Origin: Mobula hypostoma
Lineage: Eukaryota
Direction: 5' to 3'
DNA: 64,000 nucleotides
Assembly (NCBI RefSeq): GCF_963921235.1
Contig: NC_086125.1
Coordinates: forward strand, 6,386,001 to 6,450,000
Shown: piece by piece, positions 7,168 through 52,790 of the stretch
Numbering within the stretch: the stretch's first letter is position 1
How the letters are laid out: every line of letters starts with the position of its first letter
The notes under the pieces: model-generated
The model's input: only the letters and a program-made list of their open reading frames with translations
What the model was told of the DNA's origin: nothing
The model's database searches: none
Position numbers and translations under genes: made by a program

Positions 7168-7317
7168 TATTCTGGGGCACTGAGCAGGAACAGAGGTTCT
7201 CCACAACCTCTCCGTTGGACTGGTCTCAGGTCACTCTCCTGCTGATAGGAGGGACAAGCATGACGTTTTGCAGAAGGGATCAGCGTGGGGAAAACAATTT
7301 GAGCTTCACCTACTCAC

Positions 7318-18124: not shown

Positions 18125-18189
<65 letters not shown>

Positions 18190-25039: not shown

Positions 25040-25069
25040 TCATTCAAAAGACATCAAGTTTGTGGGAAG
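25040..25069 (-). pseudogene. RALGPS-like terminal coding exon (LPTNLMSFE*)
   Basis: Poly-T tract plus TGCAG acceptor, then CTT CCC ACA AAC TTG ATG TCT TTT GAA TGA; RALGPS1/2 end in P.NLM.FE*. Confidence 0.92.
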
Positions 25070-25529
25070 CTGCAACAAAAAAAAAGTAAGGTCATGAGAA
25101 AGAAGATCGGGGCTAGGCCATTCAGCCCATTGAGCCTGCTCTGTAATTCTATATGATCGTGGCTGATCTAACTTTTGTCCATTATCCATAGGCTCCTTTC
25201 TTACTGATTAATGATCTCAGTTTTGAATGTACTCAAGGATTGAGCCTTCACAGCTTTGAAGTAAAGAGTTATAAAGCCCCTCAAACTTCGGAAGCCAGTC
25301 CTGATCTTTGTTATAAACACAGACCCCTTCATTCTGAGGCTATTCCCTCAGGTCCTTAATACCCCTGTGAGGGAAACATCTTCCCCAGCATTTACTTCAT
25401 CAAGCTATGAAGAAACTTTTGTTTCAATATGATCACCTTTTTTCAAAACTCTCAACTTTCCTTGCAAGACTGCTCCGTAATCCCTCTCAGTGAACCTTCT
25501 CTGAAATGCCTCCAACAATAATACATCCT

Positions 25530-26200
25530 TCCTGTGGAGAGAGTGAGCAATTTCAAGTTCCTGGGCCTGGACACCTCTGAGGACCTAGCCTGGACCCAAC
25601 ATATCGATGCAGCTATAAAGGAGGCAAGATGGTGACTGTATTTCATTCGGAGTTTAAGGAGATTTGGTTGTCACCAAAAACAATCTCAAATTTCTACATC
25701 TGAACCATGGAGTGCAGTCTAACTGGCGGCATCACCAGCTGGTATTAGGGCGTAGGGGGCTACTGTACAGGATCGAAGTAAGCTGCAGAAAGTTGTAAAA
25801 TTAGTCAACTCCATCATGGGCACTAGCCGCTGTAGTATCCAGGACATTGTCAAGGAGAGATGCCTCAAAAAGGCAGTGTCCATCATTAAGCATGCCCATC
25901 ACCCAGGGCATGCCCTCTTCTCATTGCAAACATCAGAGAGGAGGTACAGAAGCCTGAAGGCACACACACAACAATTCAGGAACAGCTTCTTCCCCTCTGC
26001 CATCTGATTTCTGAATGGACATTGAACCCATGAACACTACCTCACAATTTTCCCTATTTGTTACACTACTTATTTGACTATGTAATATATATACTGGCTG
26101 GAATTCATTGTCCCTCTATTATCATGTATTGCATTGTACTGCTGCCGCAAAGTTAACAAATTCCATGATATATACTGGTGATGTAAAACCGGATTCTGAT
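25530..26200 (+). mobile_element. Rex1/Babar-type LINE 3' fragment
   Basis: VERVSNFKFLG and HPGHALFSL...RRYRSLKAHT..FRNSFFPSAI motifs. Confidence 0.8.
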
Positions 26201-26424
26201 AAACTTCCCATACTATTCTAGACATGGTCTCACTAGTTAATTGTACAGTTGTGGTAAGGCCTCCCACTCCCTACGTTTATAGTCTAACCCACTTGAGATA
26301 CAACCCAACATTCCATCAGCTTTGCCAAATACCAACTTGCACTTTATGGTGGCTTTCTGTGTATTATATACAAGGATCCCCAAATCCCTTTACGCTGGAG
26401 CTTTCTATAGTCTTCCTATTTATA

Positions 26425-26630
26425 CAAAAGTTGCTAGCGGGCCAGGCAGCATCTCTAGTAAGAGGTACAGTTGACGTTTCGGGCCGAGACCCTTCGTCAG
26501 GTCCTGACAAAGGGTCTCGGCCCGAAACGTCGACCGTACCTCTTCCTAGAGATGCTGCCTGGCCTGCTGCGTTCACCAGCAACTTTTATGCGTGTTGCTT
26601 GAATTTCCAGCATATGCAGAATTCCTCGTT
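26425..26630. mobile_element. Fold-back Penelope-like mini-insertion
   Basis: Inverted arms centred near 26502 with back-to-back hammerhead motifs; 12-bp TSD TTCCTATTTATA (26413-26424, 26631-26642). Confidence 0.88.
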
Positions 26631-27809
26631 TTCCTATTTATATACTGTTTTACTATTGTTCTTACTGAAGTTAACTTCACATTTCCTGAGCTGTATTTGA
26701 AAGGTGCGAAGTTCAAAGGTGCATGTAATATCAGAGCATGTATACAGTATACAATCTGAAATTAATCTTCTTCGCAGACATCCATGAAACAAAGAAATCC
26801 CAAAGAATGGATGATAGAAACATCAAAGCCCTGAAGCTCCCTCCCACCCTTCCTTCGCACAACCAGTAGCAAAATCATCAGCACTTATTCCCCCCCAACC
26901 GCAGAAGCGCCAATCCCCCCCCCACCCCAACCCACTCCCCACCATGCAAGCAACCGCAGAAGCCCCAAAGAGTCCTTGATCCAGGGTCCACCAACCCCCC
27001 CCACCCCCCCCCCCGGCACCCTGTCTCAAGGAACAACAAGCTCTCACTCTCCATCGAAAGATTTATCAGCTTTTTCCCCATCACTTAACCCAATTCTCTG
27101 AAATTAATTGCTTACATCTTCTCAGCTTGCTCGCTCCCATATTTTGAAACCATCAATCTTTTGGCTATTGTACATTTCCCAACCTGAGGTCCATGGTTAA
27201 CGGTAGTAGGGGTCCAAGGCATAAAATATATTGGGAACCCCTGATTTAAAGGAAAGATGACTATATATTGCCAACAGCTGGAAGTCCAGCACTGATTCCT
27301 GCAACACCTCACTGTTTACAAGATGTCAACCTGAAAATTACGCCAGTATCCCTACTGTGGCTTCCTGCTAAGTTTAGTAGCCTTCTGACCTCATCATACA
27401 ATCTTCGACTCCATGAGGTATTGCAAAGAAACTTTTTGTCGAATGAGGGGCAAGCTTTAAGACGGGAAGCAAGCCAGGGAGGGATGGCAACCTGTGACAA
27501 TGGTGAGGGTGGAGTGACAAAGGGAGAGGGACTTGCCTCGTCTGTGGTGTCCGGGTGGTCAGTTGATTCACAAAGCACTGTCACTTGATAGAAAGAGTGC
27601 AGGGCATGAAGGAATTGCCTAGCAAGACCAAACTTCAAGGATATTTCATGAGCTGTGAAGCACTCAGGGTCTCAGATGATATGAAAGGCACTATGTAAGT
27701 GCAAGTGTTTCCTTCTGAATCAACACAACGGACAGAATGGGCCACCTCATTCACAGAAAGCATGAAAGGCACATCCTGAGTGTCAAGGCATACTCTGGAG
27801 TTAGGGTAT

Positions 27810-29250
27810 AGAAAAGGATGTAGGCAAAAGGCGGGCAACTATAGGCCAGTTAGCATAACATCTGTAGTCGGGAAAGTGCTTGAAGCTGTCATTAAGGAAG
27901 AAATAGTGAAATATTTAGAAAGGAGTGGTTCCATTAGACAGACGCAGCATAGATTCAGAAAGGGCGGGTCCTGTTTGACAAACTTACTGGAGTTCTTTGA
28001 GGACATAATGAGTGCAGTGGATAGAGGGGAACAGTTGGATGTCGTTTACTTGGATTTCCAGAAGGCATTCGATAAGGTGCTGCACAAGAGACTTATAAGT
28101 AAGATACAGATGCATGGAGTCGGAGGAAGTGTATTGGCATGAATAGTGGATTGGTTAACCAATAGAAGGTAGAGAGTTGGTATAAATGGGTGTTTCTCCG
28201 GTTGGCAGTCAGTGGTGAATGGGGTGCTGCAGGGGTCGGTGCTGGGCCCGCAGCTGTTTACCACTTACATTGATGATCTGGAAGAGGGGACTGAGTGTAG
28301 TGCAGCAAAATTTGCTGATGACACTAAACTGAGTGGAAAAGCAAATTATACAGAAGATGTGGAGAGTCTGCAGAGGGATATAGATAGATTAAGTGAGTGG
28401 GCCAAGGTCTGGCAGATGGAATACAATGTTGGTAAATGCGAGATCATCCACTTTGGAAGGAATAATAGAAGAGCAGATTATTATTTAATTGGTGAAAGAT
28501 TGTAGCATACTGTTGTGCAGAGGGACATGGGAGTGCTTGTGCATGAATTGCAAAAAGTTGGCTTGCAGGTACAACAGGTTATTAAGAAGGCAAATGAAAT
28601 GTTGGTCTTCATTGCTAGAGGGATTGAATTCAAGAGCAGGGAGGTCATGTTGCAACTATACAGGGTACTGGTGAGGGCGCACCTGGAGTACTGTGTGCAG
28701 TTCCGGTCTCCATACTTGAGGAAGGATATACTGGCTTTGGAGGCAGTGCAGAGGAGGTTCACCAGGTCGATTCCAGGGATGAAGGGGTTAACCTATGAGG
28801 AGAGATTAAGTGGCTTGGGACTATACTCTCTGGAATTCAGAAGAATGAGAGGGGATCTTATAGAAACATATAAAATTTTGAAAGCGATAGGTAAAAATCG
28901 AAGTTGGAAAGTTGTTTCCATTGGTAGTTGAGACTAGAACTAGGGGACATTGCCTCAAGATTCAGGGGAGAAGATTTAGTACGGAGATGAGGAGAACTGT
29001 TTTTCCCAGAGCGTGGTGAATCTGTGGAATCCTCTGCCCGGGGAAGCAGTTGAGGCTTCTTCACTAAATATATTTAAGAAACAGTTAGATAGGTTTTTAC
29101 ATAGTAGGGAATTAAGGGTTATGGGGAAAAGGCAGGTAGATGGAGCTGAGTTTACGGACAGATCAGCCATGATCTTATTGAATGGTGGGGCGGGCTTGAT
29201 GGGTCGGATGGCCTACTCCTGCTCCTATTTCTTATGTTTTATGTTCTTAT
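27810..29250 (+). mobile_element. CR1 LINE, RT domain to 3' tail, with stops and frameshifts
   Basis: NYRPVSITSVVGK, YLDFQKAFDKV, QGSVLGP, KFADDTK motifs across ORFs 27780-28931. Confidence 0.95.
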
Positions 29251-30134
29251 TAAAGTATACAGCAGATATTAATTTCAACAGTAATCAGCCTTCAGCTCTG
29301 AACATTGATTGTAGATTGAATTTAAAATGCAACAATAGTCTTCCTGAAGCTGCATTTTAGAGTAAATTTTAGAACAGGAAACTCCCAATTGACTGATATA
29401 TCGGCATATGCATGAATGCAATCAACACCCATTGACCCAAGATTCTGCACAAACATGAATATGACGCTGAGTCAACGATAATTAACACTCATTTTGGGTG
29501 CGTTGGTGGGAAGATCCCGATACTTGAAGCATTACATGCAACTCAAAAGCAGCATTGTAACTATAGAAAATATCCTGTTACCTTTGCTCTTTAACATATA
29601 AAAATGTGCTGTAATATTGGATCAGGAAGCCTCTCTCTCAAGTGACTCCAAAGGCTGTCAAGCTTTAGTGTGTGTCCCAAATAAAGGCTCTTATGTTATC
29701 AGCTGTCTCTCTCTCTGGCGGCTTCGTTCACAGTCACAACCAGCCTAGCATGCAAGACTTTGATTGCCTTACTAAAGTCCATACAGATAATGTACATCTC
29801 CTTTCTTTCAGGCGTCTTAGTGACCTCCTTAGAAACTCAAATTAATGAGTAAAGATTTCTGCCTCAAAGCTATGTTAAATGTGTGTGATAAGCCCCTACC
29901 TTCCAAATCCCCTTGGTTCAGATAGCATTAATGTTTCCGGCATGAAATTATATGGCTTATCTCTGGTATCTTATCTTCTTTAGTAACATTGGTTGTCCTT
30001 CAACCTTCACATACCTCAGTTGTAGTGAACAAACCTATAAAAATAGCAACTTGAGATACATCTCGATGGGCCGTGGGTTAATCAAGCCTCAGGTATCCCA
30101 CAATTTACAACACCTTCTCCTCAAGGTGGGAGGA

Positions 30135-31042
30135 GAAGATGCTGGCGTGACACAGCTCACAGCGGCCACTCTGGTGGTGATGTCTGTTATGTGTCAAGTA
30201 GGGTGCCGTGCACAATCCTGATTTGATGGAGACGGACGTGAGAGCACGGAGGAACATCTGGTGAAACTTTTGAAATGCCTGCTTCGCTGTTGCTGCTACT
30301 GTGTGGTCCAGAATCTCCGGAGGAGAAGGCCCCGAGTCCTCGGCTTTGCTTGTTGCTTGGCAGCCGGGGCGGGGTCGAAGCGCTCGGCAGAGGATGGTGC
30401 TTGTGGTGATCTATACATATATATATATGTTGTGACTGGTTACCTGTCTGGACACGCCCCTCTGCTGACTGTTCCTGTGGCTCCTTCCATAGACCCCTGA
30501 ATAAAGGCGATTGTGTCACTGCTCCTCCCCTCAGTCCAGGGCAGATACTCAGCATGGTCGAGGTCACATTTTACTGCTAATAAAAGCCTTTCAGTATTTA
30601 CTCTACTTCCAGTCTTTTGGAGTAATTGATAGTGCATCAGTGCTCGAAGGGGCTGGTTGGAGGCTTGAAGTTTTCGGCCGGACGCAGAATTCGCTGCGGT
30701 TCGGTGCTTCCAATGGTGCTGCATCGGCAAGTTGGCAGCGCTTGGAGGTTCATGGCAGGGAGAGTTCCTCCCTTCTGCCATCTGCGTGAGATGATGGGGC
30801 TATCGGGACTTTGAGACTTTTCTTTTTACCATGCCCATGGTCTGCTCTTTATCAAATTATGGTATTGCTTTGCACGGCTGTAACTATATGTTATAATTAT
30901 GTAGTTTTGTCAGTTTTAGTCTTGGTTTGTCCTGTGTTTTCTTGTGATATCATTCTGGAGGAACGTTGTATCATTTTTTTAATGCATGCATTTCTAAATG
31001 ACAATAAACGAGGACTGGGTGTCCTCATAATCTAAAAAAAAT
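30135..31042 (+). mobile_element. Non-autonomous LINE-related repeat with poly-A end
   Basis: Homologous to 48255-48921; starts AAGATG, ends GTCCTCATAATCT(A)n; interrupted by a solo LTR. Confidence 0.75.
30402..30639 (+). mobile_element. Solo LTR (238 bp)
   Basis: TG...CA termini, 5-bp TSD GTGCT (30397-30401, 30640-30644), internal AATAAA; the empty site is visible in the paralogous copy near 48546. Confidence 0.85.
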
Positions 31043-31357
31043 ACTCATATACCCTTCCGTGAACTTGCATCCTTCTCTTTGGTGAATACAGATGAGAAGG
31101 ACTCATTCTGGACCTCATCCACATCACCCAGCTCCACACATAGATTAACCCTTTGATTCCCAATGGGACCCACTCTTTCCCTGCCTACTCTCTTGTTCTT
31201 GATATAAAAAATCTTGAGATTCTTCTTAACCTGTTATTCTTAACCAAGGAGAATTCATGTGCTTTTTCATTTTGTCCTCTTAACCTGCAAAGCTTGATAT
31301 TTATCTTTGGCGGGGGACTAGAGGAAACCTGATAGACTTGGATTGGGATGTACTTGC

Positions 31358-31447
31358 CTGTCTCCAGTTGGTCTTGCAAGTTCTGCTCAGATGCTTGAAC
31401 CACAGCGTAGCATTCATTCTGCTGCCTGCCAGAAACTTGTAGGAATT
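31358..31447 (-). pseudogene. RALGPS-like PH exon (NSYKFLAGSRMNATLWFKHLSRTCKTNWRQ), acceptor lost, GC donor
   Basis: Strong match to NSYKFQAGNRMNAMLWFKHLS; no AG|GN at the expected position (CTTCCT-AAT); donor CAG|GCAAGT. Confidence 0.92.
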
Positions 31448-31569
31448 AGGAAGCTCAAGGCAGCGTTGAACCACAATTACACAGCACAACACAAAGAAGA
31501 GCAGCAATAATTTGCAAAACAGATAATTGCACTGGTGATAAAAACTAAAAGAGCTCTATTGTGCCCTAT

Positions 31570-32098
31570 GCTCCTGACTCTACATTGGTGAAGCTCGTCA
31601 TAAATTGGGGGAGAACTTCGTCAAGCACCTCAAAAGGGATCCACCAAAAGGGAAGTTCCTGGTGGCCAAACATTTTAACTCCAGTTCCCATTCTTGGTCC
31701 AACACGTTGGTCTACGGCCACCTCTTGTGTCAAGATGAAGCTATCCTCAGGGTTGTAGAACAACACCTTATATTCCATCTGGGAACCCTCCAACCTGATG
31801 GTACGAATTTCCCTCCCCCTCCCTTCTTCATCTATTCCCCACTCTGGTCTCTTACCTCTCCTCACCTGCCTTATCACCTCTCCCCCTCCTTCGCTTTCTC
31901 TATGATCCACTCAGCTTTCTTCCTCCCCAGCCCTTTAACCATTCTGGCTTCACATCACCTTTCAGCCATTCCCCTTCCCCCCCACCCTTTTCATTCTGGT
32001 GCCGTTCCCCTTCTTTCTCAGTCCTGAGGAAGGGTCTCAGCCCGAAACAGCGACATTCATTTCCTTAGATGCTGCCCAACCTGCTGAGTTCCTCCAGT

Positions 32099-32102
<4 letters not shown>
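31570..32102 (+). mobile_element. Older Penelope-like fragment
   Basis: VAKHFNS...EQHLIFHLGTLQPDG; variant hammerhead near 32020-32055. Confidence 0.8.

Positions 32103-32184
<82 letters not shown>
32103..32184. repeat. (TG)n microsatellite
   Basis: Seen directly, one interruption. Confidence 0.97.
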
Positions 32185-32186
<2 letters not shown>

Positions 32187-32689
32187 GCTAAACGAACTTT
32201 AATACTGCTTTGTGCAGCCGAATTTGCAGATGATACAAGATAGGCAGAGGGGCAGGCAGTGTTGAGGAAGCAGGGAGTCTGCAGAAGGACTTGGATAGAT
32301 TGGGAGAATAGGCAAAGAGGAGGCAGATAATATAGATTAGGGAAGTGTATGGCCATGCATTTTGGTAGAAATTTACAAGTTCAAAGTAAATTTATTATCA
32401 AAGTACTTATATGTCACCATACACGACCCTGAGATTCAGTGTATTGCAGGCATACTTAATACATTTATAGAGTGATCGCCAAAACAGAATCAATGAAAGA
32501 CCGCACCAACTTGAGCATTTAACCAGTGTGCAAAAGACAACAAACTGCAAATACAAAAAAAAACTAATAATGAACAAATAAGCAATGAATATTGAGAACA
32601 CGAGATGACAAGCTCTTGACAGTGAGTCTATAGGTTGTGGGAACGTTTCAACGATGGGACAAGTGAAGTTGAGTGACGTCATCCCCTTT

Positions 32690-33360
32690 GGCTGAGGGGT
32701 AATAACTGTTCCTGAACCTGCTGGTGATAATCCTGAGGCTCCTGCACCTTCTACCTGGTGGCAGCAACGAGAAGAGAGCGTGTCCTGGATGGTGGGGGTT
32801 CCTGATGATGGACGCTGCTTTCCTGTGACAATGTTTCATGCAGATGTGCTCAATGATGGAGAGGACTTTACCCATAATGGACTGGGCCATATCCACGACT
32901 TTTAGTATGATTTTCCCATGGTGTTTCCATACAGGGCTGTGATGCAACCAATGTACTCTCTATTACACTTCTGTAGAAGTTTGTCTTGCTGACTTTGAGT
33001 AAGAGGTTGTTGTTATGGAACCCTTCAGTCAGATTTTCAACCTCCCTCCTGTATGCCGATTCACCACCACCTTTGATTTGGTGTATGACGATGGTGTCGT
33101 CAGCAAACTTGAATATGGCATTGGAGCTGTGCTTGGCCACACAGTCATAAGTACAAGGCAAGTAGAGCAGAGGGCCAAGTACAGAGCTCTGTGGGGCACC
33201 TCTTCTGGTGGAGATTGTGGAGGAAATATTGTTTTGCCAATCTGAAATGAATCAGGTCCACAAGCGAGGAAATCAAGGATCCAATTGCACAAGCAGGTAC
33301 TGAAGTCAAGGTCTTGGAGCTTGTTGATTACTTTTGAGGGATGATAGTACTGAAGTGTTC
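32690..33360 (-). mobile_element. Rex1/Babar-type LINE fragment
   Basis: LCNWILDFL, KFADDT and HPGHALFSLLPPGRR motifs. Confidence 0.82.
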
Positions 33361-34435: not shown

Positions 34436-34541
34436 CGTGTTCGGGGTCCGTGAGCTGGAACACGTCCTCGCTCTCTGGATCTTCAATCAGGAGAGGTATC
34501 CAACCCACAATCGACAACCTCTTGCAGTAACTCGACTTAAA
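34436..34541 (-). pseudogene. RALGPS-like PH exon (FKSSYCKRLSIVGWIPLLIEDPESEDVFQLTDPEH)
   Basis: ACAG acceptor, GTGAGT donor, 106 nt; FKS...S..GW....DPE..D.F.LTD motif. Confidence 0.92.
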
Positions 34542-35924
34542 CTGTCCCACAACACCAGTAGATAAATTCAATAATTAAAAATAGTTTAAGGTGCCTTCAC
34601 TTTGGACTGAATTAAATAAAATCTTTCTGGTGCTTCAAACTCCAACCTCTGCTCTTTTCCCACCCACCACCCACATACAGTATATATTTTTGAGTGACTG
34701 TATGCTTATTTGCTGTACTCTACGTGTCCTGTGCTGTGTATGACTGATGGCAGTGGGTTTTGCCCTGGAAAAACGGTGTTTCGTTTGGCTCCATTTGTAC
34801 AGGATGGTTGAATGACAATTAAACTTCAACTTGAACACCCAGATACACCAAAAGGGAGATGAACCCAATGTATTTGGGAAAGGGAAAACACAAGGGAAAA
34901 GCAGGATCAGAGAAGTGCAGGAATTGAGGGATCTCGGGAAGCTTGACAGTGTATGGTTAGGAGGCAGTTCAAGTTATTTGACTTCATTTGCCAAGAGCAA
35001 GGACCTGCTTGTGATGACAGCAAGGATACTCATTACAGCTCCTGACACCACACCGTTGGAAGGATGAAGTACCATTGGTGCAGAGATTTATGAGTGAGCT
35101 GTCAGGGTTAGAAAGGTCAAGAGACCAGCTAAATTGGGGCTGTTTATTTTGGAACAGAGGACATGGGAGATATGATTGTGGCATTTAAAATTATGAGAAG
35201 CCAATGTAATTAAGGGACATAAGTTTAAGGCCATCGGACAATGAATTAATGGGGAGGTAATAAAAACTATTTTTCCCCCACTCAAGGGTGGTGGAGGCCT
35301 GAACAAGGTAGAAGCAGAAACATCTAACCCTTTGAAAAGTGATCATGAAAACTCAAACCTATAAACCACTTAATGAACTGTAATCTAAAACACAAAGGAC
35401 AAAGGGCTGGGAAGTAGAATTATTCTGAATAGGTCTCTGTCAATTTGCAGGGATACAATAGACTGAATAGCCTCCTGTGGTACGTGTGCTGGAAGCAGTT
35501 CAGACCCTCGCTGACCCTTCAACAGCGCCTCCCTAGCTAGAAACCTTCACTCAAAGGACATGGCCAAAAGAATGTGATCATTTCTGGTTGTCCCTTCCCG
35601 AAATGGATTCATCCCGACACGCGGGACAGAAGCAAGGTCGCATTGTGTATTCCACGGACCAGCAAATCCCAGCCGGCTTAGCTAACAGAGCGGCGGACAC
35701 CCCTGCTGAAATCCAGAGGAAAACACACAGAGGATGCAGAGGGGGATCACAAAGCCGAGGAAAGAGGACTGGGTCGACACAACAGAGACCTTTGGAGAAG
35801 AGGAATTCGGTGGGTAATACCATTCCGGCTGACCGGAAGTGCACCGAGTGTGGTAAGCGTAAAGGAGTTGCGTGCTTACTGATCTGGTTAACAACGGATC
35901 GTGCAATCTGGGGTATATTATAAA

Positions 35925-36446
35925 GAATGTGTGTATTCACATCCCATTCCCATTCTGATTTGTATATCCACGGCCTCCTCTACTGTAAAGATGAAGCCAC
36001 ACTCAGGTTGAAGGAACAACACCTTATATTCCGTCTGGGTAGCCTCCAACCTGATGGCTTGAACATTGACTTCTCTAACTTCCGCTAGGCCCCACCTCCC
36101 CCTCATACCCCATCCGTTATTTATTTATATACACACATTCTTTCTCTCTCTCTCCTTTTTCTCCCTCTGTCCCTCTGACTATACTCCTTGCCCATCCTCT
36201 GAGTTTTCCCCTCCCCCTTTTCTTTCTCCCTAGGCCTCCTGTCCCATGATCCTCTCATATCCCTTTTGCCAATCACCTGTCCAGCTCTTGGCTCCATCCC
36301 TCCCCCTCCTGTCTTCTCCTATCATTTCGGATCTCCCCCTCCCACTCCCACTTTCAAATCCCTTACTCACTCTTCCTTCAGTTAGTCCTGACGAAGGGTC
36401 TCGGCCCGAAACGTCGACTGTACCTCTTCCTAGAGATGCTGCCTGG
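35925..36446 (+). mobile_element. Young Penelope-like 3' fragment with intact hammerhead
   Basis: GLLYCKDEATLRLKEQHLIFRLGSLQPDGLNIDFSNF, pyrimidine-rich UTR, hammerhead at 36384-36419. Confidence 0.9.
36384..36419 (+). ncRNA. Minimal type-I hammerhead ribozyme motif (Penelope-like element)
   Basis: AGTC-CTGACGA-A-GGGT(CTCG)GCCC-GAAA-CGTC-GACT: stem I AGTC/GACT, conserved cores CUGANGA and GAAA, stem II hairpin, palindromic ACGT stem III, GUC cleavage triplet. Confidence 0.8.
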
Positions 36447-37398
36447 TCTCATTGTCACACTGATAGTTTTTTTGAATTTCCTCTGTACAAGTTACTGTTG
36501 GCTCTCCCACATTACTACAGGAACAATGATATAGAAAACTTTCATTGGCTGAAGATTACTTTAAGATATCATAAAATGTTTAGAGAAATGCAATTATTTT
36601 CCTTCTCATCCTTATCACAAAGTTAGCAGGCGATGAGGTACAAAGCCTCAAATGCTGGCTGTTCATCTCAGACCAAAGCCCAACATGGAAAATATTCCAC
36701 CCACAGCACAAACTAACTTTAAAGAACGTAAATTTGCAGAATTATGTTCTTTAAACCTAAACCTGAAATTGAAAGGGTCAAAATAGCTTCAAACCGAAAC
36801 ATTAACTCTTCCCAGATACCACCTGACCTGCTGCGCGCTTCCAACATTTTGTTAGTATTTTAGATTCAAATTAAATGGTTCAGTTTAATACCAGAGAATG
36901 TATACAGTACACAGCCTGAAATTCTTCCTCTTCTCAGACATCCACAAAAGAAGAAACCCCAAAGAATGAATGATAGACACATGGTTGAATGAGAGATTTT
37001 CAGTGTCTGTGGCTTTTTTAAAAAGTGAGTTTCATTTTGTATGGGGAGGGGTCACTCTTGCTCTCTGGTCTAAAATCAAATGCTGCTGCAAACAGTCAGC
37101 AGGTTGGGCAGCACCTGTGGAAAGAGAAACACTTAACCATTTCAGGTCCAGGATCATTCAACAGAACAAAGAGAGAAAAACAAGTTAGTTTTTTTAGTAT
37201 CAGAGAAGTGAGGAAGGGCTGAGTAGAACAAAGGGAATGTATCCCGGAGGGGAAGCCCATTTGTGCAAGCACATTATGTCTTTGCGTCTATAATGTGGTT
37301 AATAGTATCAAGTCATTCAGTACCCAACTCTCTCTGATAACTGGCCAACAGAAATAAAAGACTGTCAACGAGAGGCAGTGTGAGGACCGATTCCCTAC

Positions 37399-37486
37399 CA
37401 GAGGTTTCTTGCCATTCTTCAGGATAGTTTTCCTCTGCAGAAGACTTTCAATGGTTGCACATCCTTGAACATCAGGCAATACGAGT
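37399..37486 (-). pseudogene. RALGPS-like exon, start of PH domain (LVLPDVQGCATIESLLQRKTILKNGKKPL)
   Basis: CTCTTAG acceptor, GTAGGG donor; matches TIQGVLRRKTLLKEGKKP. An upstream acceptor (exon extending to 37506) would be out of frame. Confidence 0.88.
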
Positions 37487-39262: not shown

Positions 39263-39331
39263 CCGACTACATCCCTGCTGCAGCTCTGCGTTTTCCGTGC
39301 CATGGTACCCAGAGAATGATACAGTCGAGTC
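39263..39331 (-). pseudogene. RALGPS-like exon (TRLYHSLGTMARKTQSCSRDVV)
   Basis: CACAG acceptor, GTATGT donor, 69 nt, phase 2 to 2; RLYHSLG motif. Confidence 0.88.
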
Positions 39332-40763: not shown

Positions 40764-40821
40764 CTTTCAAAAGTTGGCCGTGTGCTCTGCTCACTATCAT
40801 CACTACTTTCTTCTTGGGTAG
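40764..40821 (-). pseudogene. RALGPS-like exon (TQEESSDDSEQSTRPTFE)
   Basis: TTCTTACAG acceptor, GTGAGA donor, 58 nt, phase 1 to 2; acidic/Ser-rich, ends P.FE(R) like RALGPS SWPAFER. Confidence 0.75.
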
Positions 40822-41508: not shown

Positions 41509-41647
41509 ATTCCATTTGATACTCACGGCAAACCACAGAATTTAACACCTGAAACCACACCCAGAAAGGTGGTAAAGCTATTCCATTTGATACTCACTGC
41601 AAACCACAAAATTTAACACAAGAAACTACACCCAGAAAGGTGGTAAG
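41509..41647. repeat. 71-bp imperfect tandem duplication
   Basis: ATTCCATTTGATACTCAC...CACCCAGAAAGGTGGTAA present twice. Confidence 0.85.
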
Positions 41648-42975: not shown

Positions 42976-43689
42976 TGAGATCTGACTCCAAGCGGATGCA
43001 AAAGATCCCATGACACTTTCCTAAACAATTGTACGAGTTGGAGTTGCATAACATAGAAACAGGTCCTTCAGCCCATTACCTCTATGCCAACCATCACACC
43101 TAGCCATAGTAGTTCCACTTGCCTACATAAATCCCACATCCCTGCTCGTTCACCTACTTATTAAGATGCAGGGAAAGCTTCTGGATGTTACGATGCACCT
43201 TAAATGTTATTACTTTTCCTGCCTCCCCTACCTCCGCTGGTACCTCATTCCAGATACCATCCACTGTTTAAAAATTTACCCTTCTGATCTCCTTTAAGCC
43301 TCCTCCCTCTCACCTCATGCAATCTAGTTTAAACACTTTTACCACGGGAAACAGACACTGGCTATCTACCGCATACTGACCAATTAATCACGACTGATGA
43401 CTTGTGCCTTTTTTTTGTTTCCCACGGGCTGCTGAACTGTTGAAAGATGCTTCCCTTGGTGTTCAACTGCAAGTCCTTCTGACAAAGATAATCAACTCTG
43501 ACAGAATGTGAGGTACGAACTTCAGTTTGTGGAGCTTCCAATAAACAATAACACTTGTGTTAAAGCAATCTTGTGAAAGTATTCAAAAATGATAAACAGA
43601 AGTGATATTAAACAAAATTTAATATATTTTTATATGAGAAATAAGGACATATAGGAATATACTTGATCTATAGAGCAACCTCGGACCAT

Positions 43690-44280: not shown

Positions 44281-44479
44281 TACATTAGTTAAAAGTGTGC
44301 AATTTTTAATCACTAATAAGAAAGCATGTTTCTACTCGTTACTACAAGGAACTTGCTATGCACAAATTGGTTGTTAGCTCTCCTATTCCAGTGACTACCC
44401 TTCAGGGAGCATTTCATTGGTCAAAACCGTGAAAGGTTTATAGATGGAAATATGAAACTGAAGATCTGTAGCAAAGGTT

Positions 44480-45012
44480 GGGCCACACCCGGAGTGTTGC
44501 ATACAGTTCTGATCACCCCACGATAGGGAGAACGCCGAGGCTTTGGAGAGGGCGCAGAAGAGGTTTACCAGGATGCTGCATGGTTTAGAGGGCTTACGGT
44601 ATCACGAGAGGCTGGACAAATGGGTTGTTTCTCTGGAGTGGTGGAGACCGAGGGGAGATCTGATAGAGGTTTACAAGATTATAAGAGGCTCAGATAGAGT
44701 AGACAGAGAGTATTTTTTGAGCTGGGTAGAAATGTCTAGTACCAGAGGGCATGCATTGAAGATGAGAGGGGGTAGGTTCAAGGGGGATATGAGGGGCAAG
44801 GGAGTGGTGGATGCCTGGTATGCACTGTCTGGTATGGTCGTAGAGACGTACATTTGAGGCTTTTAAGGGATATTTAAACAGGCACATGGATACGAGGAAG
44901 GTGGAGGGATATGGACATTGTGTAGGTAGGAGCGATTAGTTTTCAGATTTACTTTCAGCTGGTTCACCACAACACTGTGGGCCCAAGGGCCTGTTCCTGT
45001 TCTATGTTCTAT
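44480..45012 (+). mobile_element. CR1 LINE 3' fragment
   Basis: LERAQKRFTRML...RGDLIEVYKI; TTCTATG tail ends 37 bp from a RALGPS-like exon donor. Confidence 0.88.
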
Positions 45013-45048
45013 GAAATCATTCAAGCAGACAGTGCTCCCATACAGTAC

Positions 45049-45209
45049 CTGGCCATGACTCATCTGGAGAGTGGTCACAGGCCGGCTGGTGTTCGGCCTG
45101 CATCGCCCACGGCAAACTACCTTCGATCACACTATCATCCAAGAGGCTCTGCGGTCGACTGCCGAGGAACGTGGCCCCCTCGGGATCCGTGGTGCTCGCC
45201 CGTCTACTG
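45049..45209 (-). pseudogene. RALGPS-like exon (SRRASTTDPEGATFLGSRPQSLLDDSVIEG...SWP)
   Basis: GTACAG acceptor, GTACTG donor, 161 nt, phase 2 to 1; ATF....P..LLDDSV.E motif. Confidence 0.85.
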
Positions 45210-46187
45210 CTGTACAAAGTAGGAAGGATACACTGAGGACACTTAATCTGCAGCCACCTATAAAACAGGACTAGAAGAGTCAGCGACGCAAAGATAGGAA
45301 CACAGCTCGACCTTCACGTTCTGCTCAGCGTTCGCCAGCTCCCTCCACGACTAATATCTGAGGTACAAAGCAACTGCAGGAAATTAAACAGATTGAATAA
45401 AATTAAAGACTCATGGCAGAACTGTCCAGTCCACCAGAACGTACATGACTTTCAAAGAGAACTCCCCCACACCATCAGTGTGGGACAGGGGCACCCCGAC
45501 CCCCAGCAAGGCGCCAGCTGGAGATGGGAGACCCCAACCACAGACCCCAAGGAAGCAGCAGTGGGAAGGAGTGGAAACCCCTGCTGCCTTCAAGGACTCA
45601 GTGGTGATCGGTGGAGCCCAGGTTATCTAATTAATAACCACAGACGTGGGCTCAGGACAGAGTTCAAATCATGGTGGCTGTGCGATTATAAATCTGGATA
45701 ATGTCCTGGAATTTAAAATTGTCATTAGGAACGATGATCACACAAAACCACCCAGATGCCCAAACGTACAACTCTAATGGGTTTCAGATGTGAAAATCTG
45801 TTACTCTTACCTTGTGGGGTCTAAAAATTATTCAATTAAGTTAATGAAGTTAAATAAACTACTCACAGGAGCAGATGGCGTCCTTTCACATCATTCAAAG
45901 CTTCTCTCAATGTCGTTCTGAATCAGATGGTAGCTCAGAATGGTTCTCTTTCCCCTTGGCCAGGTTGAACTGCACTGAAGATGCAGCAGATGGTGCCCTC
46001 TGTGCCAAAGTGCCAGCTCAGGTGTGCCACTGAAGGCTGGTTTTGTCCAGACACCTGCAGTCCCATTTAGCAGCCGTTCATGGTTGACAGAATCTGAATC
46101 AGGTTTAATCACCAGCACGTGTCGTGAAATTTGATGCACAGTGACACATACTTGCCCAACGCCCTCAGAGTGAAGTCCATCACTTAC

Positions 46188-46293
46188 TGGTAATCAGCGC
46201 TCTGCCACTTCCTGTGACCACGCAGCAGGCACAGACACGAGGCTGTGGCATCGCCATCAGAATATTCAACTGCTTCAGTGGAGGACAGTGGAC
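46188..46293 (-). pseudogene. RALGPS-like exon (GPLSSTEAVEYSDGDATASCLCLLRGHRKWQSADY)
   Basis: TCTCAG acceptor, GTAAGT donor, 106 nt; GHRK..S..Y matches GHRKCHSLGY. Confidence 0.8.
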
Positions 46294-46409
46294 CTGAGAC
46301 AGAGGGGTAGCTAGAGTTTAGACAGAACTTGTCACTCTGTTCAATAGGAATAGCCTCCTCCTGCCAGAACCAATCTTACTTCCCTCCTCACTCATCCTCA
46401 TTCATAGGT

Positions 46410-46717
46410 GTCAACATAAAAGGCATCCGTTAGTCTTGCGAGACCATGGATCTGCGCCTGGAAAGTCTTCACTCTCCAGGGTGCAGGCCTGGGCAGGGTT
46501 GTATGGAAGACCAGCTGTAAGTCTCCCCTCTCCACGACACCAATGTTGTCCAAGGGAAGGGCATTAGGAACCATACAGCTTGGCACCAGTGTCGTCGCAG
46601 AGCAATGTGTGATTAAGTGCCTTGCTCAAGGGCACAACACGCTGCCTCGGCTGGGGCTCAAACTAACGACCTTCAGTTCGCTAGTCCAATGCCTTAACCA
46701 CTTGGCCACATGCCCAT
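46410..46717 (-). mobile_element. tRNA-derived SINE
   Basis: Reverse-complement copy of 53475-53775. Confidence 0.8.
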
Positions 46718-47335
46718 GGGTGTCAACAGCTCCTTAGGAAATAAAGAATTTTAATGCAGTGCCATTCTACCATGGTGCAAATCACTCCCCACAATAAAAT
46801 CATTTTCAGTGGCTGAGTGGATGGCATCCCTTTCACCCCCTAAGGCTGTGGATTCAATTTTCCATTCCAGAAATACCAGTACAAAAGTGTGAGCTAATAC
46901 TCCAGCATGTCACCAGGAGTACGGCATCTTTCAGGTGTGATGTTTAATCAAGGCCAATCACAAAGACCTCCAACATCATACCAAAGTGAAGCAAAAGCTT
47001 TCCCTGGTATCTTACCCAACCTTTATCCATGTTCAACGTTACTAGATGATCTGGTGAAAACCATCTTGCTTATGCAAGCTATAATACAATAGCGGGGTAC
47101 ACTTCAAAAGTACTTTGTTAGCGGGAAGGTGCTTTAGGGCTTTTGAACGTCATGAAAAAATACACTGATAACAGTTCCTCGGAAAGCACAAGGCTCAAGG
47201 ATAGCTTTCTGGTTATAAAACTATTGAACTGTCCACTAGTACGATAAGGCTCTTGACCTCACAATCTACTTCCTTATGGCCATTCACCTGATTGCCTGCT
47301 TGCACTACAGTTTTGCACAAAGTTGGAGCCCTCAC

Positions 47336-47386
47336 CTTCAGCTTCGATGTGGAGGACATGACACAGGTTCAAGCAATAGAGAGAGT
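47336..47386 (-). pseudogene. RALGPS-like exon ([15 protein letters not shown]), premature stop and phase shift
   Basis: TTCCACAG acceptor, GTGAGG donor; LSL..EP motif; in-frame TGA at 47340-47338; ends in phase 2 while the next exon starts in phase 1. Confidence 0.8.
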
Positions 47387-47581
47387 CTGTGGAACGCTGT
47401 CAAATCATATGTGAGCCTCGTGGAATAACTCTGGAATTCCGCAAATCTCAAGTGAATCAATGTTTCGGAATGCAGCCAGTGTTTATTTTTGCAGGAAAAG
47501 GCGCAACCTCCTCCTGTCGAATTCAACAGTAAAAGTAAAAACAAAAATAACCTTGGAGAACCAAACTGGAGACGATGGCAG

Positions 47582-47672
47582 CTGTAGTTGTCTTGCTCCA
47601 AGAAGGATTGTAGCTCCTCAATGTATCGTGCAGAGTCCAGATACATCTGGACATGAGGCAATGATGGAAGAT
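47582..47672 (-). pseudogene. RALGPS-like exon ([30 protein letters not shown]), donor lost
   Basis: TTTATAG acceptor; matches LPHVQKYL.SV.YIEELQKFVEDDNY; expected GT donor reads CT (TAC AG|CTGCC). Confidence 0.9.
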
Positions 47673-48254
47673 CTATAAACAATGCAAGTTAGAATAGTAA
47701 CACATAGTTCAGACATCACATGTGGAGATAGAGGAAAAGAATTAATGTGAAATGTCATCAACCCAGCCGGAGAAGTCCCAGGCCAGATACTCAGATTGTC
47801 AGTGTTGCCAAGTTCTTTGGATCACTGAATGCCCTTTCCAATGCCTGCATGGTCTTCTTCAGTTCCTCAAAAGACCCAAAGCACTTTGTGCCTTCTGGAT
47901 GCTTCTATAGTTTCAGCAGGTATGGCCTTGGGATGCCCAAAAGCTGATATTGTTTCATGATTTCTCCCCAGAGAGGCCTTGTAATCAGTCTTGAAGGATC
48001 TTCTCTGTGCTCCCTGAACTGGCTGACGTGACAAAGCGTAGAGTGGAGTACCTCTTTTGGGGGATTTAGCGTCAGGCACGCAGACAGTGCCGAGCCTTGG
48101 TGCTGAGGATTCTGGCCTGAGGGAAGATACTGATATTGGCTCATTTATCCTACTAATGGATTTGTATAGAACTCTAACATTACAGGACTTCAAATGCAGT
48201 ATTCCTTGTCCTTTATTATTCAGTCTTGTAAAGGAGCTTCTTCTACTCCTGCCA

Positions 48255-48921
48255 AAGATGGCTGAGAGGCAGCAAGTGTGGTCTTGGTCTGGAGAAAGAC
48301 AAAGAAGGATGAACAGCGTGCGCGGCCATTCCGAATGATATTGTACGTGGTAACTAGGGAGTCGTGCACAATCCTGATTTGATGGAGACAGTCGTGAGAA
48401 GCACGGAGGAACACCTGGAGAAACGTCTGAAATGCCCGCTTCGTTGCCGCTGCTACTATGCGATTGAGAATCTCCGGAGGGGAAGGCCCCAAATCCTTGG
48501 CTTTGCCTATTGCCGGGGCCGGGGTTGAAGCGCTTGACAGAGATGGTGCTCGGTGTCGGAGAGCTGGTCAGAGGCTCGGAGTTTTTGGACGGACTCAGAG
48601 TCAGACTGTGGTCGGATGCTTCCAGGATGCTGCATCGGCAAGTTTGCGGTGCTGGAGGTTCACTGTCTGCGTGAGATGATGGGACTTTTGAGAGACTTTG
48701 AGACTTTTTACCGTGCCCATGGTCTGCTCTTTATCAAATTACAGTATTGCTTTGCACTGTTGTAACTATATGTCATAATTATGTGGTTTTAGTCAGCTTT
48801 TAAGTCGGTTTGTCATGTGTTTCTGTGATATCATTCTGGAAAAACATTGTATCATTTCTTAATGCATGCATTACTAAATGACAATAAAAGAGGACTGTGT
48901 GTCCTCATAATCTAAAAAAAA
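48255..48921 (+). mobile_element. Non-autonomous LINE-related repeat with poly-A end
   Basis: AAGATGGC start, same body and tail as 30135-31042. Confidence 0.75.
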
Positions 48922-49104
48922 CTTGAATATAGTATTCTGGTTACGATTCAGAAGTAGATCTCTGCACGACAAGCTCCAAGATATTCAGTAGAATGAAATG
49001 ATTTGTTGCTTTGCTGAATAGTTAAGATCAGGCGTAGTACAGCAGGCCACAGGTCCTTGATGTCAGCCATGGAATCAGAGCATGCAAACAGATCATTCTG
49101 CCAG

Positions 49105-50301
49105 GCATATAGATGAGGGTAGTGCAGTGGATGTGATCTATATGGATTTTAGTAAGGCATTTGACGAGGTTCCACACGGTAGGCTTATTCAGAAAGTTAG
49201 AAGGCATGGGATCCAGGGAAGTTTGGCCAGGTGGATTCAGAATTGGCTTGCCTGCAGAAGGCAGAGGGTGGTGGTGGAGGGAGTACATTCAGATTGGAGG
49301 ATTGTGACTAGTGGTGTCCCACAAGGATCTGTTCTGGGACCTCTACTTTTTGTGATTTTTATTAACGACCTGGATGTGGGGGTAGAAGGGTGGGTTGGCA
49401 AGTTTGAAGATGACACAAAGGTTGGTGGTGTTGTAGATAGTGTAGAGGATTGTCAAAGATTGCAGAGAGACATTGATAGGATGCAGAAGTGGGCTGAGAA
49501 GTGGCAGATGGAGTTCAACCCGGAGAAGTGTGAGGTGGTACACTTTGGAAGGACAAACTCCAAGGCAGAGTACAAAGCAAATGGCAGGGTACTTGGTAGT
49601 GTGGAGGAGCAGAGGGATCTCGGGGTACATGTCCACAGATCCCTGAAAGTTGCCTCACAGGTGGATAGGGTAGTTAAGAAAGCTTATGGGGTGTTAGCTT
49701 TCATAAGTCGAGGGATAGAGTTTAAGAGTTGCAATGTAATGATGCAGCTCTATAAAACTCTGGTTAGGCCACACTTGGAGTATTGCGTCCAGTTCTGGTC
49801 ACCTCACTATAGGAAGGATGTGGAAGCATTGGAAAGGGTACAGAGGAGATTTACCAGGATGCTGTCTGGTTTAGAAAGTATGCATTATGATCAGAGATTA
49901 AGGGAGCTAGGGCTTTACTCTTTGGAGAGAAGGAAGATGAGAGGAGACATGATAGAGATGTACAAGATAATAAGAGGAATAGATAGAGTGGATAGCCAGC
50001 GCCTCTTCCCCAGGGCACCACTGCTCAATACAAGAGGACATGGCTTTAAGGTAAGGGGTGGGAAGTTCAAGGGGGATATTAGAGGAAGGTTTTTTACTCA
50101 GAGAGTGGTTGGTGCGTGGAATGCACTGCCTGAGTCAGTGGTGGAGGCAGATACACTAGTGAAGTTTAAGAGACTACTAGACAGATATATGGAGGAATTT
50201 AAGGTGGGGGGGTTATATGGGAGGCAGGGTTTGAGGGTCGGCACAACATTGTGGGCCGAAGGGCCTGTACTGTGCTGTACTATTCTATGTTCTATGTTCT
50301 A
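49105..50301 (+). mobile_element. Young 5'-truncated CR1 LINE with long open RT frame
   Basis: ORF 49082-50302 (406 aa): YMDFSKAFD, GVPQGSVLGPLLF, KFEDDTK, LVRPHLEYCVQFWSP; (TTCTATG)n tail. Confidence 0.96.
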
Positions 50302-50619
50302 GCTTGTGCGTGCCAGAGCCCTCCGAGACCAACGCTCTAATTTGTGTTTTCTTCAGTAGGACAGCTTCCACTAACGCCTTCCGTTTCCAACACGAATCAA
50401 TATGGAAAATTCTCAGATCGCCAATCAGAAACAAATTCCTTCAAGCTTGGAACTTTGTGACCATACATGACATTAATCCCCTCAAAGTGTCTTGTCAGAT
50501 TAAATGTACAACCTGCCAAATCCATTGTACTGTTGAGCACTTGGAATTTATTTTATATAACCACTTTAACATAACTTTTAATTCCCTGGCTCTGACCACC
50601 TCATTTTCACCATGGATGT

Positions 50620-52310
50620 TCAGTCCTTATACACTTCTATTCCCCCAGCGAGGCGGCCTCAAAGCTCTCCGCTTCTTTCTTAACAACAGAACCAACCAAT
50701 CTCCCTGCGCCGCCACCACTCCCCTTTGGCTCCTCCCACTTTCTCCAGACCCAAGGGGTAGCCATGGGCACCCACGTGGGACCCAGCTATGCCTTCTTTT
50801 TGGCTGGCTACGTATAACAGTCCATGTTCCAAGCCTTCCCCGGTAATACTTCACAATTCTTCCTCCACCACATTGATGACTTCATTGGCTTTCCTTTCCA
50901 GGACATCATAGATGTTTTCTTTCCTCCACTATTGATGCTGTCCTCGTCCTCATCTCCTTCATTTCCCAAACATCCACACTCATCTCATCTTCCCACTGCT
51001 TTGCCAGTGATAGAGTTCCTCTCATCCTTGCCTACCACTCCATCAGCCTCCATATTCAACAATCATTCTTGACAGCTTCCGCCACCTCAAGGGATCTGAC
51101 CACTGAACATACCTCTCCCATCTCCTCTGCTTTCTGCAGGGATCACTTCCTCCACGACTACTTTGCCCATTTGTCCCTCCCCACTTGTCTCCGTTCCAGT
51201 ACTTCTCCATGCAAGTGCCCCAAGTACTGCGCCTGCCCATGCACCTCCTCCCTCACCTCCGTTCAGTCCTCAAACTGTCAGTCCTTCCAGGTGAGGCGAC
51301 ATCTTACCTGAAAATCTCTCGGGTCCGGTGCTCCTGATGCAGCTTCCTCTACAATGGTGAGACTCATTGTAAACTGGGGGCCCCACTTCATCGAGCACTT
51401 CTGCTCCATCCACTAAAAGCAGAACTTCCTAGTGGCCAAACATTTTAATTCTGATAACAAGCAACACACATCAAAGTTGCTGGTGAACACAGCAGGCCAG
51501 GCAGCTTCTCTAGGAAGAGGTACAGTCGACGTTTCAGGCCGAGACCCTTCGTCAGGACTAACTGAAGGAAGAGTGAGTAAGGGATTTGAAAGTGGGAGGG
51601 GGAGGGGGAGATCCAAAATGATAGGAGAAGACAGGAGGGGGAGGGATAGAGCCAAGAGCTGGACAGGTGATTGGCAAAAGGGATATGAGAGGATCATGGG
51701 ACAGGAGGCCCAGGGAGAAGGAAAAGGGAGGTGGGGGGAAATCCCAGAGGACGGGCAAGGGGTATAGTCAAAGGGACAGAGGGAGAAAAAGGAGAGAGAG
51801 AGAACTACGATTTTAATTCTGATTCCCGTTTTGACATGTCGGTCCACGAGGAAGCCATCCTCAGGGTGGAGGAGCAACACCTGATATTCCATCTGGGCAG
51901 CCTCCAATCTGAGGGCATGAATATCGATTCCTCCTTCCAATAATTTTCCCCTCTCCCTCCTCTCCTTCTATTTCCACACACTGGCATTTGACCTTCTCTC
52001 ATCTGACTTTCACTCCCCTGGGTCTCCTCCCTCTTCCCATTCTCCTATCCTATCAGATTCCTTCTTCTCCAGCCCTTGACCTTTCCCGCCCACTTGGCTT
52101 CACCCTTCACCTTCCGGCCAGCCTCTTTCCCCTCCCCCCCACCTTTTTATTTTGCCATCTTCCCCCTCCCTTCTCAGTTCTGAAGAAGGGCTTTGGCCTA
52201 AAATGTTGACTGTTTATTCCTTTCCATAGATGCTGCCTGACCTGCCGAGTTCCTCCAGCATTTTGTATGTGTTGCTTTTGATTTGCAGCAAATGTCAAAT
52301 CTCTCGTGTT
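50620..52310 (+). mobile_element. Old Penelope-like element (RT and GIY-YIG remnants) with a younger antisense copy nested at 51456-51809
   Basis: GVAMGT..GPSYA RT motif, EEQHLIFHLGSLQ; nested copy flanked by 14-bp TSD ATTTTAATTCTGAT (51442-51455, 51810-51823). Confidence 0.85.
51524..51559 (-). ncRNA. Minimal type-I hammerhead ribozyme motif
   Basis: Same 36-mer as 20049-20084 on the minus strand. Confidence 0.75.
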
Positions 52311-52671
52311 TAACATAACTACTTCATCTCGTGGATTAAATACCAATCCAAGCTTCCATCTCACTCGCTGTTAATGATCACATGGCACCACTTTAAAAGG
52401 GCAATATTTATCTGACAGATTCACAGACCAACTTCTGAAAGTTGGTGTGCTCAAAATTGGCTGCTGCATTTCCAAAATTACAACAGCATCCCCAATTTGA
52501 ACTTCAACAGCTGTAAAGCACTTTGATATTTCCTTAAAGAGACACACACAAAGATCAATCCAAATCTTTTTCTCTGATGGTTAAATTGTGCAAAACAACA
52601 GTGTATTTAAAAAGACCTGTCTTCGGCCATTCTGACGGACAAATTACATCAATGGGATTCTATCAGCAAAC

Positions 52672-52790
52672 CTCATCACTGTAGACTTCTGAGCAATCAC
52701 TGACATTCGAGGAAATGTTTCTGTATAACCTTTGAACATTTTCCAATGCAATCTTTAAACATTGAGAGTGCTTGTAGGAGAAAATAAAAT
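52672..52790 (-). pseudogene. Candidate degenerate RALGPS exon (GEF domain; ...ALENVQRLYRNISSNVSD...)
   Basis: CCTTTCAG acceptor; LENVQR..NI....SD resembles LENEQR...NNILRIISD and lies in the expected order. Similarity is weak, and the CR1 motif ALERVQR is an alternative source. Confidence 0.4.

Follow-up and report, generated by a model that had tools for sequence, protein, structure and literature searches.

In humans, RALGPS2 (1q25) hosts ANGPTL1 and RALGPS1 (9q33) hosts ANGPTL2 (PMC6371847). The angiopoietin-like family has also been studied in teleosts; that study mentions RALGPS nowhere, by term counts (PMC5237311). We found no paper that names RALGPS3, and literature searches for RALGPS together with ANGPTL6 or synteny, or with sharks and ohnologues, brought up no description of a third RALGPS gene. 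Human ANGPTL6 lies beside PPAN on 19p13.2 and has no RALGPS host. Here we analyse a 64 kb stretch of the genome of the batoid Mobula hypostoma (contig NC_086125.1, positions 6,386,001 to 6,450,000), called the window below. It is gap-free vertebrate DNA, with many long interspersed nuclear elements (LINEs) and other repeats, and contains part of a RALGPS-type gene upstream of PPAN. We consider it probable (about 0.78) that this is the 3' half, exons e9 to e19, of a real third RALGPS gene ('RALGPS3') that has here become a recently inactivated, still transcribed unitary pseudogene. The gene is not an unknown one: at least nine elasmobranchs, sharks as well as rays, already have it in RefSeq, named 'RalGPS1-like' or 'RalGPS2-like'.

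Exons of the RALGPS-type gene

Exons were numbered e1 to e19 after the genomic loci of a skate (Leucoraja) and a sawfish (Pristis), which have 19 coding exons each. They were located by tblastn with database RALGPS proteins and by blastn with the skate and sawfish exons. Ten collinear RALGPS-type exons (e9 to e15 and e17 to e19; Table 1) run on the minus strand from position 47672 down to 25040 and make up the 3' half of the gene. At the nucleotide level they are 74-91% identical to their skate and sawfish counterparts (blastn), and their protein E-values reach 1e-22, well past chance (tblastn). For e9 the identity is 80-93% by tblastn and 89-91% by blastn. Collinearity with the Pristis locus extends over the whole window, introns included, with nucleotides 66-79% identical, so that the absence of an exon is meaningful.

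When a candidate exon at 47688-47581 (minus strand) was compared with 1.84 billion representative proteins, there were 114 matches at E<=0.001, and all 20 of those that were looked up are RALGPS-type or unnamed or generic RasGEF entries. Tblastn with the long database matches returned ordered minus-strand matches from 47673 down to 31346, and tblastn with the RALGPS-type proteins recovered 9-10 exons in their proper order. The linker exons at 46.2 and 45.1 kb were best matched by two shark proteins, from Scyliorhinus canicula ('RalGPS2-like' at NCBI) and Rhincodon typus ('RalGPS1-like'). The e9 database search, the order of the exons and the tree described below place the predicted gene in the RALGPS family, apart from other RasGEFs. 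Pfam searches with single exon open reading frames (ORFs) found no PH domain, the pieces being too short to be informative.

The original prediction, made from the window sequence alone, had described collinear RALGPS-type exons upstream of PPAN on the same strand, and this is borne out by tblastn, blastn and the PPAN ORFs and alignments. The collinear exons within its range are real; the expected e16 is absent. Its 5' limit at 52790 was set by a supposed GEF exon ('LSD...') that proved false, as the stretch from 47.7 to 52.79 kb is free of exons. The ORF proposed for it, 52839-52666, has no tblastn match even at E 100 and lies within a block of approximately 930 bp that is collinear with a sawfish intron (53243-52311, corresponding to Pristis 64394-65384).

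Compared to skate and sawfish, the donor of e12 is shifted downstream by 15 nt. The extra residues, DESWP, are also present in both stingray proteins (Hypanus and Hemitrygon), and we therefore do not count this difference as a lesion.

Lesions in the Mobula hypostoma copy

Lesions were called against both skate and sawfish in three-way alignments, and missing exons by collinearity together with blastn and tblastn. When compared with the intact orthologues at the syntenic locus, the copy in the window carries five disabling lesions, as is expected of a unitary pseudogene. These had been overlooked in the original prediction, and the window copy is best read as a pseudogene.

Two of the lesions concern the RasGEF domain. 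The GEF exon e8 (PYLG...LSDLTYID), which encodes the core of this domain, is gone from its expected place at 48257..50382. It has no blastn or tblastn match in the window, and the corresponding sawfish segment, 66262-67641, is replaced; in skate and sawfish e8 lies about 1 kb upstream of e9. The gap is occupied by a LINE fragment with a reverse-transcriptase ORF at 49082-50302 (plus strand), an open frame of 406 amino acids with the Pfam domain RVT_1 (E 2.8e-22). The position of this LINE exactly at the lost exon suggests an insertion-associated deletion. The donor of e9 has changed from GT to CT (bases 47581-47580): the exon end AG is followed by CTGCCA, versus GTGTGT in skate and sawfish. 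Of the RasGEF domain the window holds only the last 30 codons, in e9; e8 is absent, and e1 to e7 fall outside the window.

Further downstream, e10 has lost 14 bp (junction 47346/47345), which shifts the frame and leaves a TGA in the ancestral frame. The PH exon e16 (93 nt, 31 codons, WTTYW...) is missing from its expected place at 35534..36448. It has no blastn or tblastn match anywhere in the window, and sawfish positions 77824-80425 are without counterpart. Self-blast showed that the gap (36448-35534) consists mostly of a dispersed repeat. Finally, e18 has lost its first two bases, together with its acceptor AG and polypyrimidine tract, to a 19-bp deletion (junction 31448/31447), and the only AG near e18 leads straight into a TAA. 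The PH domain is likewise incomplete: the window keeps e15, e17 and e18, but e16 is deleted and e18 is without an acceptor.

Both e8 and e16 are present in all nine relatives examined. The stingray proteins hold e8, e10, e16 and e18 in full, and the lesions are therefore specific to the lineage of the window. Contigs from other samples of the same species carry the e9 and e10 lesions unchanged.

Copies of the dispersed repeat are found at 35938-36448, 16705-17479 and 51497-51804 and are 92-94% alike. A second LINE reverse-transcriptase ORF is located at 27780-28931 (plus strand; RVT_1, E 1.4e-12).

Transcription and splicing

Four small sequencing runs from the same species, guessed to be RNA, gave low-depth contigs over exons and introns between 41800 and 47780. 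One contig of run X14 covers 47389-47780 with no differences and is unspliced across the dead e9 donor. Similarly, a contig of run X25 matches 47143-47407 throughout, free of gaps and mismatches, and is unspliced across e10.

Splicing of e12 is real, as its acceptor (45209) and its donor (45049) are both used in RNA-like contigs. In another contig of run X14 the acceptor is joined to a cryptic exon of 62 nt, which brings in an in-frame TGA and a frame shift, and in a contig of run X26 the donor is joined to a cryptic acceptor at 43534. Two further contigs have a single mismatch past the e12 donor, which would fit a continuation into e13. The spliced contigs indicate that the locus is transcribed at a low level and spliced, and that the forms seen are non-productive.

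Is the gene still functional?

An alternative is that the gene still works through lineage-specific splicing, with an alternative e9 donor, e16 skipped, another acceptor for e18 and e8 located elsewhere, or that the lesions are assembly errors or belong to one null haplotype. Several observations speak for this and against a pseudogene. Over 233 codons, the NG86 omega on the window branch is 0.25, compared to 0.20 in skate and 0.27 in sawfish, and the window has 14 specific amino-acid changes, compared to 13-16 on the sister stingray lineage. By these two measures, omega and private changes, the window lineage shows no faster protein evolution. The terminal branch of the window in the tree is not long, and the relaxed constraint expected of a unitary pseudogene is not seen. 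From e11 to e17 the reading frame is unbroken. The loss of e16 does not shift the frame and its flanking splice sites are intact and good, so that e16 could be skipped. A weak GT is found 8 nt past the dead e9 donor, and its use combined with the 14-bp deletion would bring the exons back into frame. The locus also gives rise to spliced transcripts, although the RNA nature of the runs is a guess. It should be noted that the e8, e16 and e18 lesions are seen in the assembly only.

Set against this, the exons that would have to be dispensed with are the core of the RasGEF domain (e8) and about one third of the PH domain (e16), both kept by nine of nine relatives and found nowhere in the window. 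Their loss is a strong argument against a working GEF or PH domain. The rescue of e18 would have to come from an AG that runs into a stop codon. The contigs read through the e9 donor and e10 unspliced, and the spliced form upstream of e12 carries a stop codon. That the e9 and e10 lesions recur without any difference in other samples also counts against this alternative. We therefore regard a functional gene as improbable, though it is the strongest of the alternatives.

Inactivation of RALGPS3 in the window lineage would have to be very recent, and it is somewhat surprising to find five lesions accompanied by so little drift in the coding sequence. The lack of relaxed constraint in the surviving exons leads us to read the decay as recent. 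Roughly, a neutral phase of at most about one tenth of the terminal branch would add just a handful of substitutions.

Phylogenetic placement

Searching protein databases with the catshark (Scyliorhinus) protein returned '-like' proteins in Heptranchias, Chiloscyllium, Pristis, Leucoraja, Hemitrygon, Hypanus, Rhincodon and Stegostoma. These are 51-66% identical to the catshark protein, whereas bona fide RALGPS2 is about 50% identical. The naming does not follow the genes: isoforms of one catshark gene (XP_038640831-36) carry both RalGPS1-like and RalGPS2-like names.

We built a maximum likelihood tree of 35 rows under LG+C20. The '-like' proteins, window included, form one clade (100/100), in which the window is sister to Hemitrygon and Hypanus (100/100). 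RALGPS2 from a chimaera, seven elasmobranchs and nine bony vertebrates forms another (99/97), with the third clade outside it. Bony-vertebrate RALGPS1 is supported at 100/97, and lamprey joins at 98/97. RALGPS1, RALGPS2 and the third clade form a trichotomy. The third clade thus stands outside RALGPS2 and bony RALGPS1, and the order of the three groups is not fixed. Identity within the third clade is 58-66% across elasmobranchs, and RALGPS2 branches are several-fold shorter.

Approximately unbiased (AU) tests weakly rejected grouping the third clade with chondrichthyan RALGPS2, that is, as a lineage-specific duplicate (p 0.043), and with bony RALGPS1 (p 0.049). A position as sister to all RALGPS2 was not rejected (p 0.50). 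The four RALGPS1 rows are all from bony vertebrates, and the mammalian ones are isoforms without the PH-domain end.

A database search with P0271 ('RalGPS1 isoform X1' of Xenopus laevis) brought up RALGPS2 again. This protein is really a misnamed RALGPS2 homeologue: its identity to RalGPS2 isoform X4 of X. laevis is 96%, and it has only RALGPS2 among its best matches.

Three of the third-clade models have peculiarities. The Hypanus sabinus RefSeq model (P0245) is without the 31-residue GEF exon e6 (KL..NLNNLHGLMAV...) that Hemitrygon has, and it has a 20-residue insert after FRSIQPE; these may reflect a minor isoform or a workaround in the modelling, or else hint at erosion in other stingrays. 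The Hemitrygon akajei model (P0164, 928 amino acids) has an N-terminal extension of 360 residues that is unique among the members and possibly stems from a fused upstream gene. The Pristis model (P0162) skips e14, which encodes the TRLYHSLG motif.

Gene order around ANGPTL6 and PPAN

In Hypanus, Leucoraja and Pristis, the third-clade gene hosts an antisense Fibrinogen_C gene encoding approximately 494 amino acids, and a Brix+7tm_1 gene (PPAN-P2RY11) follows 7-8 kb downstream on the same strand. By the exon maps of Leucoraja and Pristis, the nested gene lies in the intron between e7 and e8. In the catshark, ANGPTL6 is likewise found antisense inside a RasGEF+PH gene of 566 amino acids.

Identification of the nested gene was based on tree and synteny instead of raw similarity. 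The nested proteins cluster with ANGPTL6 of coelacanth, lungfish, axolotl and sturgeon (100/100), and a separate ANGPTL2 clade (99/98) holds the elasmobranchs' own ANGPTL2b. Raw similarity to human structures would have made the nested gene ANGPTL2 (427 bits versus 353 for ANGPTL6). This measure is uninformative, because the annotated ANGPTL6 of axolotl behaves alike (412 versus 359).

The sawfish has three loci on different chromosomes: RALGPS2 (P0222), the host of ANGPTL2b and the host of ANGPTL6. Its ANGPTL2b is nested in the second of these, another RasGEF+PH gene. We found no host exon in the sawfish DNA around ANGPTL2b, and this host is known by its existence and length (581 amino acids) only. 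Scyliorhinus and Heptranchias also have both RALGPS2 and the third gene.

In the sturgeon Acipenser ruthenus, ANGPTL6 is placed head-to-head with PPAN-P2RY11, followed by an ICAM-like immunoglobulin gene, and has no host. This order mirrors that of human 19p13.2. Lungfish ANGPTL6, with a gene range of 540 kb, has no called host. Synteny and tree together indicate that a third RALGPS lineage hosted ANGPTL6, that this lineage is older than the divergence of cartilaginous from bony fishes and that it was lost in bony vertebrates. The proposal of a third paralogue that had hosted ANGPTL6 is supported by the tree, the AU tests, the antisense guest of the ANGPTL6 clade in four relatives, the RALGPS2 and ANGPTL2b-host genes on other chromosomes in sawfish and the hostless sturgeon.

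A scan of the window for fibrinogen-domain motifs found no ANGPTL exon. Collinearity suggests that ANGPTL6 of Mobula hypostoma would begin approximately 2-4 kb to the right of the window. PPAN starts 14.4 kb downstream of the end of e19 (25040), on the same strand, and PPAN-like ORFs were found at 10639, 7449, 6724 and 4510.

Less probable than a functional gene is that the third clade arose by duplication of RALGPS2 (or RALGPS1) within the cartilaginous fishes, diverged fast and landed beside PPAN. The clade is found in elasmobranchs only, and its long stem (0.47) and high rates could mislead its placement. Moreover, the AU p-values are borderline, and the tree is without any chondrichthyan RALGPS1 sequence, a point that weighs against our placement, its RALGPS1 sample being four rows of which most are without the PH domain. 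However, RALGPS2 of cartilaginous and bony fishes join in a clade that excludes the third. In addition, the guest is an ANGPTL6 orthologue in a clade with bony vertebrates and lies beside PPAN in sturgeon, so that the unit of host and guest must have existed at this place before the split. The same arrangement of host and guest is seen for the RasGEF+PH gene with ANGPTL2b. Taken together, a duplication within cartilaginous fishes appears unlikely.

That the exons are the plain RALGPS1 or RALGPS2 orthologue of the species has next to nothing in its favour except the NCBI names of the relatives, given that the per-exon tblastn identity is 66-90% to the 'RalGPS2-like' proteins of Hypanus and Hemitrygon versus 35-73% to elasmobranch RALGPS2, that species with the third gene have a separate RALGPS2 and Pristis a separate ANGPTL2b host, and that the tree splits the clades; for RALGPS2 it is already refuted.

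Proposed history of RALGPS3

We suggest that RALGPS3 is older than the split of cartilaginous and bony fishes, and that in sharks and rays it carries ANGPTL6 antisense in the e7-e8 intron, with PPAN-P2RY11 directly downstream in the three batoids examined. Judging from the family, the intact protein would act on Ral GTPases as an exchange factor that does not depend on Ras. It is predicted to have a RasGEF domain of the Cdc25 type, followed by a proline-rich linker and, at the C-terminus, a PH domain that targets it to membranes.

In the window lineage, a batoid sister to the dasyatid stingrays, inactivation would have involved the loss of e8 where the LINE now sits, the deletion of e16, the GT to CT change of the e9 donor, the loss of 14 bp from e10 and the 19-bp deletion of the e18 acceptor. 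This locus should then be unable to yield any protein whose GEF or PH domain is complete. It probably continues to be transcribed at a low level, with splicing that goes partly via cryptic exons with stop codons.

We further speculate that RALGPS3 is a sister of RALGPS1 and RALGPS2 from vertebrate whole-genome duplication, duplicated together with its guest (RALGPS1/2/3 with ANGPTL2/1/6). The bony vertebrates would then have lost the host, leaving ANGPTL6 beside PPAN, and the ray lineage would have repeated this loss independently, presumably keeping the guest. We give this scenario even odds. A whole-genome duplication origin had already been proposed for the locus; it is consistent with the data and not proven, as the three clades form an unresolved trichotomy. 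The accompanying argument from a mixture of RALGPS1-like and RALGPS2-like residues is weak, since NLMSFE also ends elasmobranch RALGPS2.

Features of the window

The coordinates of exons and other features are given in Table 1. Between the end of RALGPS3 and PPAN there are two adjacent open frames (88 and 102 amino acids) at 18270-18842 (minus strand) that are transposase-like; the 102-amino acid frame (18270-18575), the one piece scanned, had no match in Pfam. Long (CA/TG)n microsatellites are found in an intron of the RALGPS-like gene (32070-32190) and in the intergenic region (18125-18245). A search of Rfam at gathering score gave no match in the 25-53 kb region.

Table 1. Exons and neighbouring features in the 64 kb window (positions are those of the window).
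Feature	Position	Strand	Remarks
Intron DNA	52311..63441	-	Collinear with sawfish e7-e8 intron (Pristis 56282-65384)
e9	47582..47672	-	Last 30 codons of RasGEF domain (DLPSLPHVQ...EQDNY); acceptor AG intact, donor destroyed
e10	47336..47386	-	51 nt versus 65 in relatives; 14-bp deletion (alignment with Leucoraja and Pristis)
e11	46188..46293	-	Linker; both splice sites intact
Cryptic exon, 62 nt	45312..45373	-	Flanked by AG and GT; joined to e12 acceptor (45209) in run X14 contig
e12	45049..45209	-	Linker; downstream donor, adds DESWP
Cryptic acceptor at 43534	43433..43534	-	Joined to e12 donor (45049) in run X26 contig
e13	40764..40821	-	Intact
e14	39263..39331	-	TRLYHSLG motif; intact
e15	37399..37486	-	Start of PH domain; intact
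e17	34436..34541	-	PH domain, SIVGW; intact
e18	31358..31447	-	C-terminal helix of PH domain, RMNATLWFKHLS; acceptor lost to 19-bp deletion
e19	25040..25069	-	LPTNLMSFE and TGA; intact; last base of stop codon at 25040
PPAN first coding exon (Brix-domain gene)	10431..10636	-	ORF and blastn, 83% to skate Brix+7tm_1 gene
PPAN second exon	7234..7433	-	blastn, 77% to skate Brix+7tm_1 gene

Comparison with known systems

The closest relatives are the elasmobranch '-like' genes (P0245, P0164, P0162, P0163 of Leucoraja erinacea and XP_038640831-36), which are orthologous to the gene in the window, have the same exon boundaries and fall in the same clade. The window copy is 85-87% identical to the stingray '-like' proteins over 231 shared columns and has the same downstream neighbour, PPAN-P2RY11. 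Whereas the elasmobranch genes encode complete RasGEF and PH domains, the window copy is without e8 and e16 and is damaged at e9, e10 and e18.

RALGPS1 and RALGPS2 share with the third gene the domain plan, the exon phases and the habit of carrying an antisense intronic guest of the ANGPTL1/2/6 type. Compared to RALGPS2, the third gene falls in a separate clade, is about 50% identical and evolves much faster. Its guest is ANGPTL6 and its neighbour PPAN, and it was not found in any bony vertebrate examined. The missing host kept by sharks and rays explains a small puzzle of human gene order, in which ANGPTL1 and ANGPTL2 lie inside RALGPS2 and RALGPS1 and ANGPTL6 stands alone beside PPAN. If the independent repeat of host loss is true, the locus would offer a natural replicate for studying in what way a nested gene depends on its host.

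What is new is one more member, here dead, of a known family, and the evolutionary story is neat but modest: a tidy case of host-gene loss around a nested gene, and no new kind of biology. The locus should be annotated as a transcribed pseudogene and not as a protein-coding RALGPS. Unlike retroposed copies, the window gene keeps its introns and has no signs of retroposition. It differs from typical unitary pseudogenes in that a rise in dN/dS is not yet detectable, and is like them in having an intact syntenic orthologue in relatives, several independent lesions and residual, aberrantly spliced transcription.

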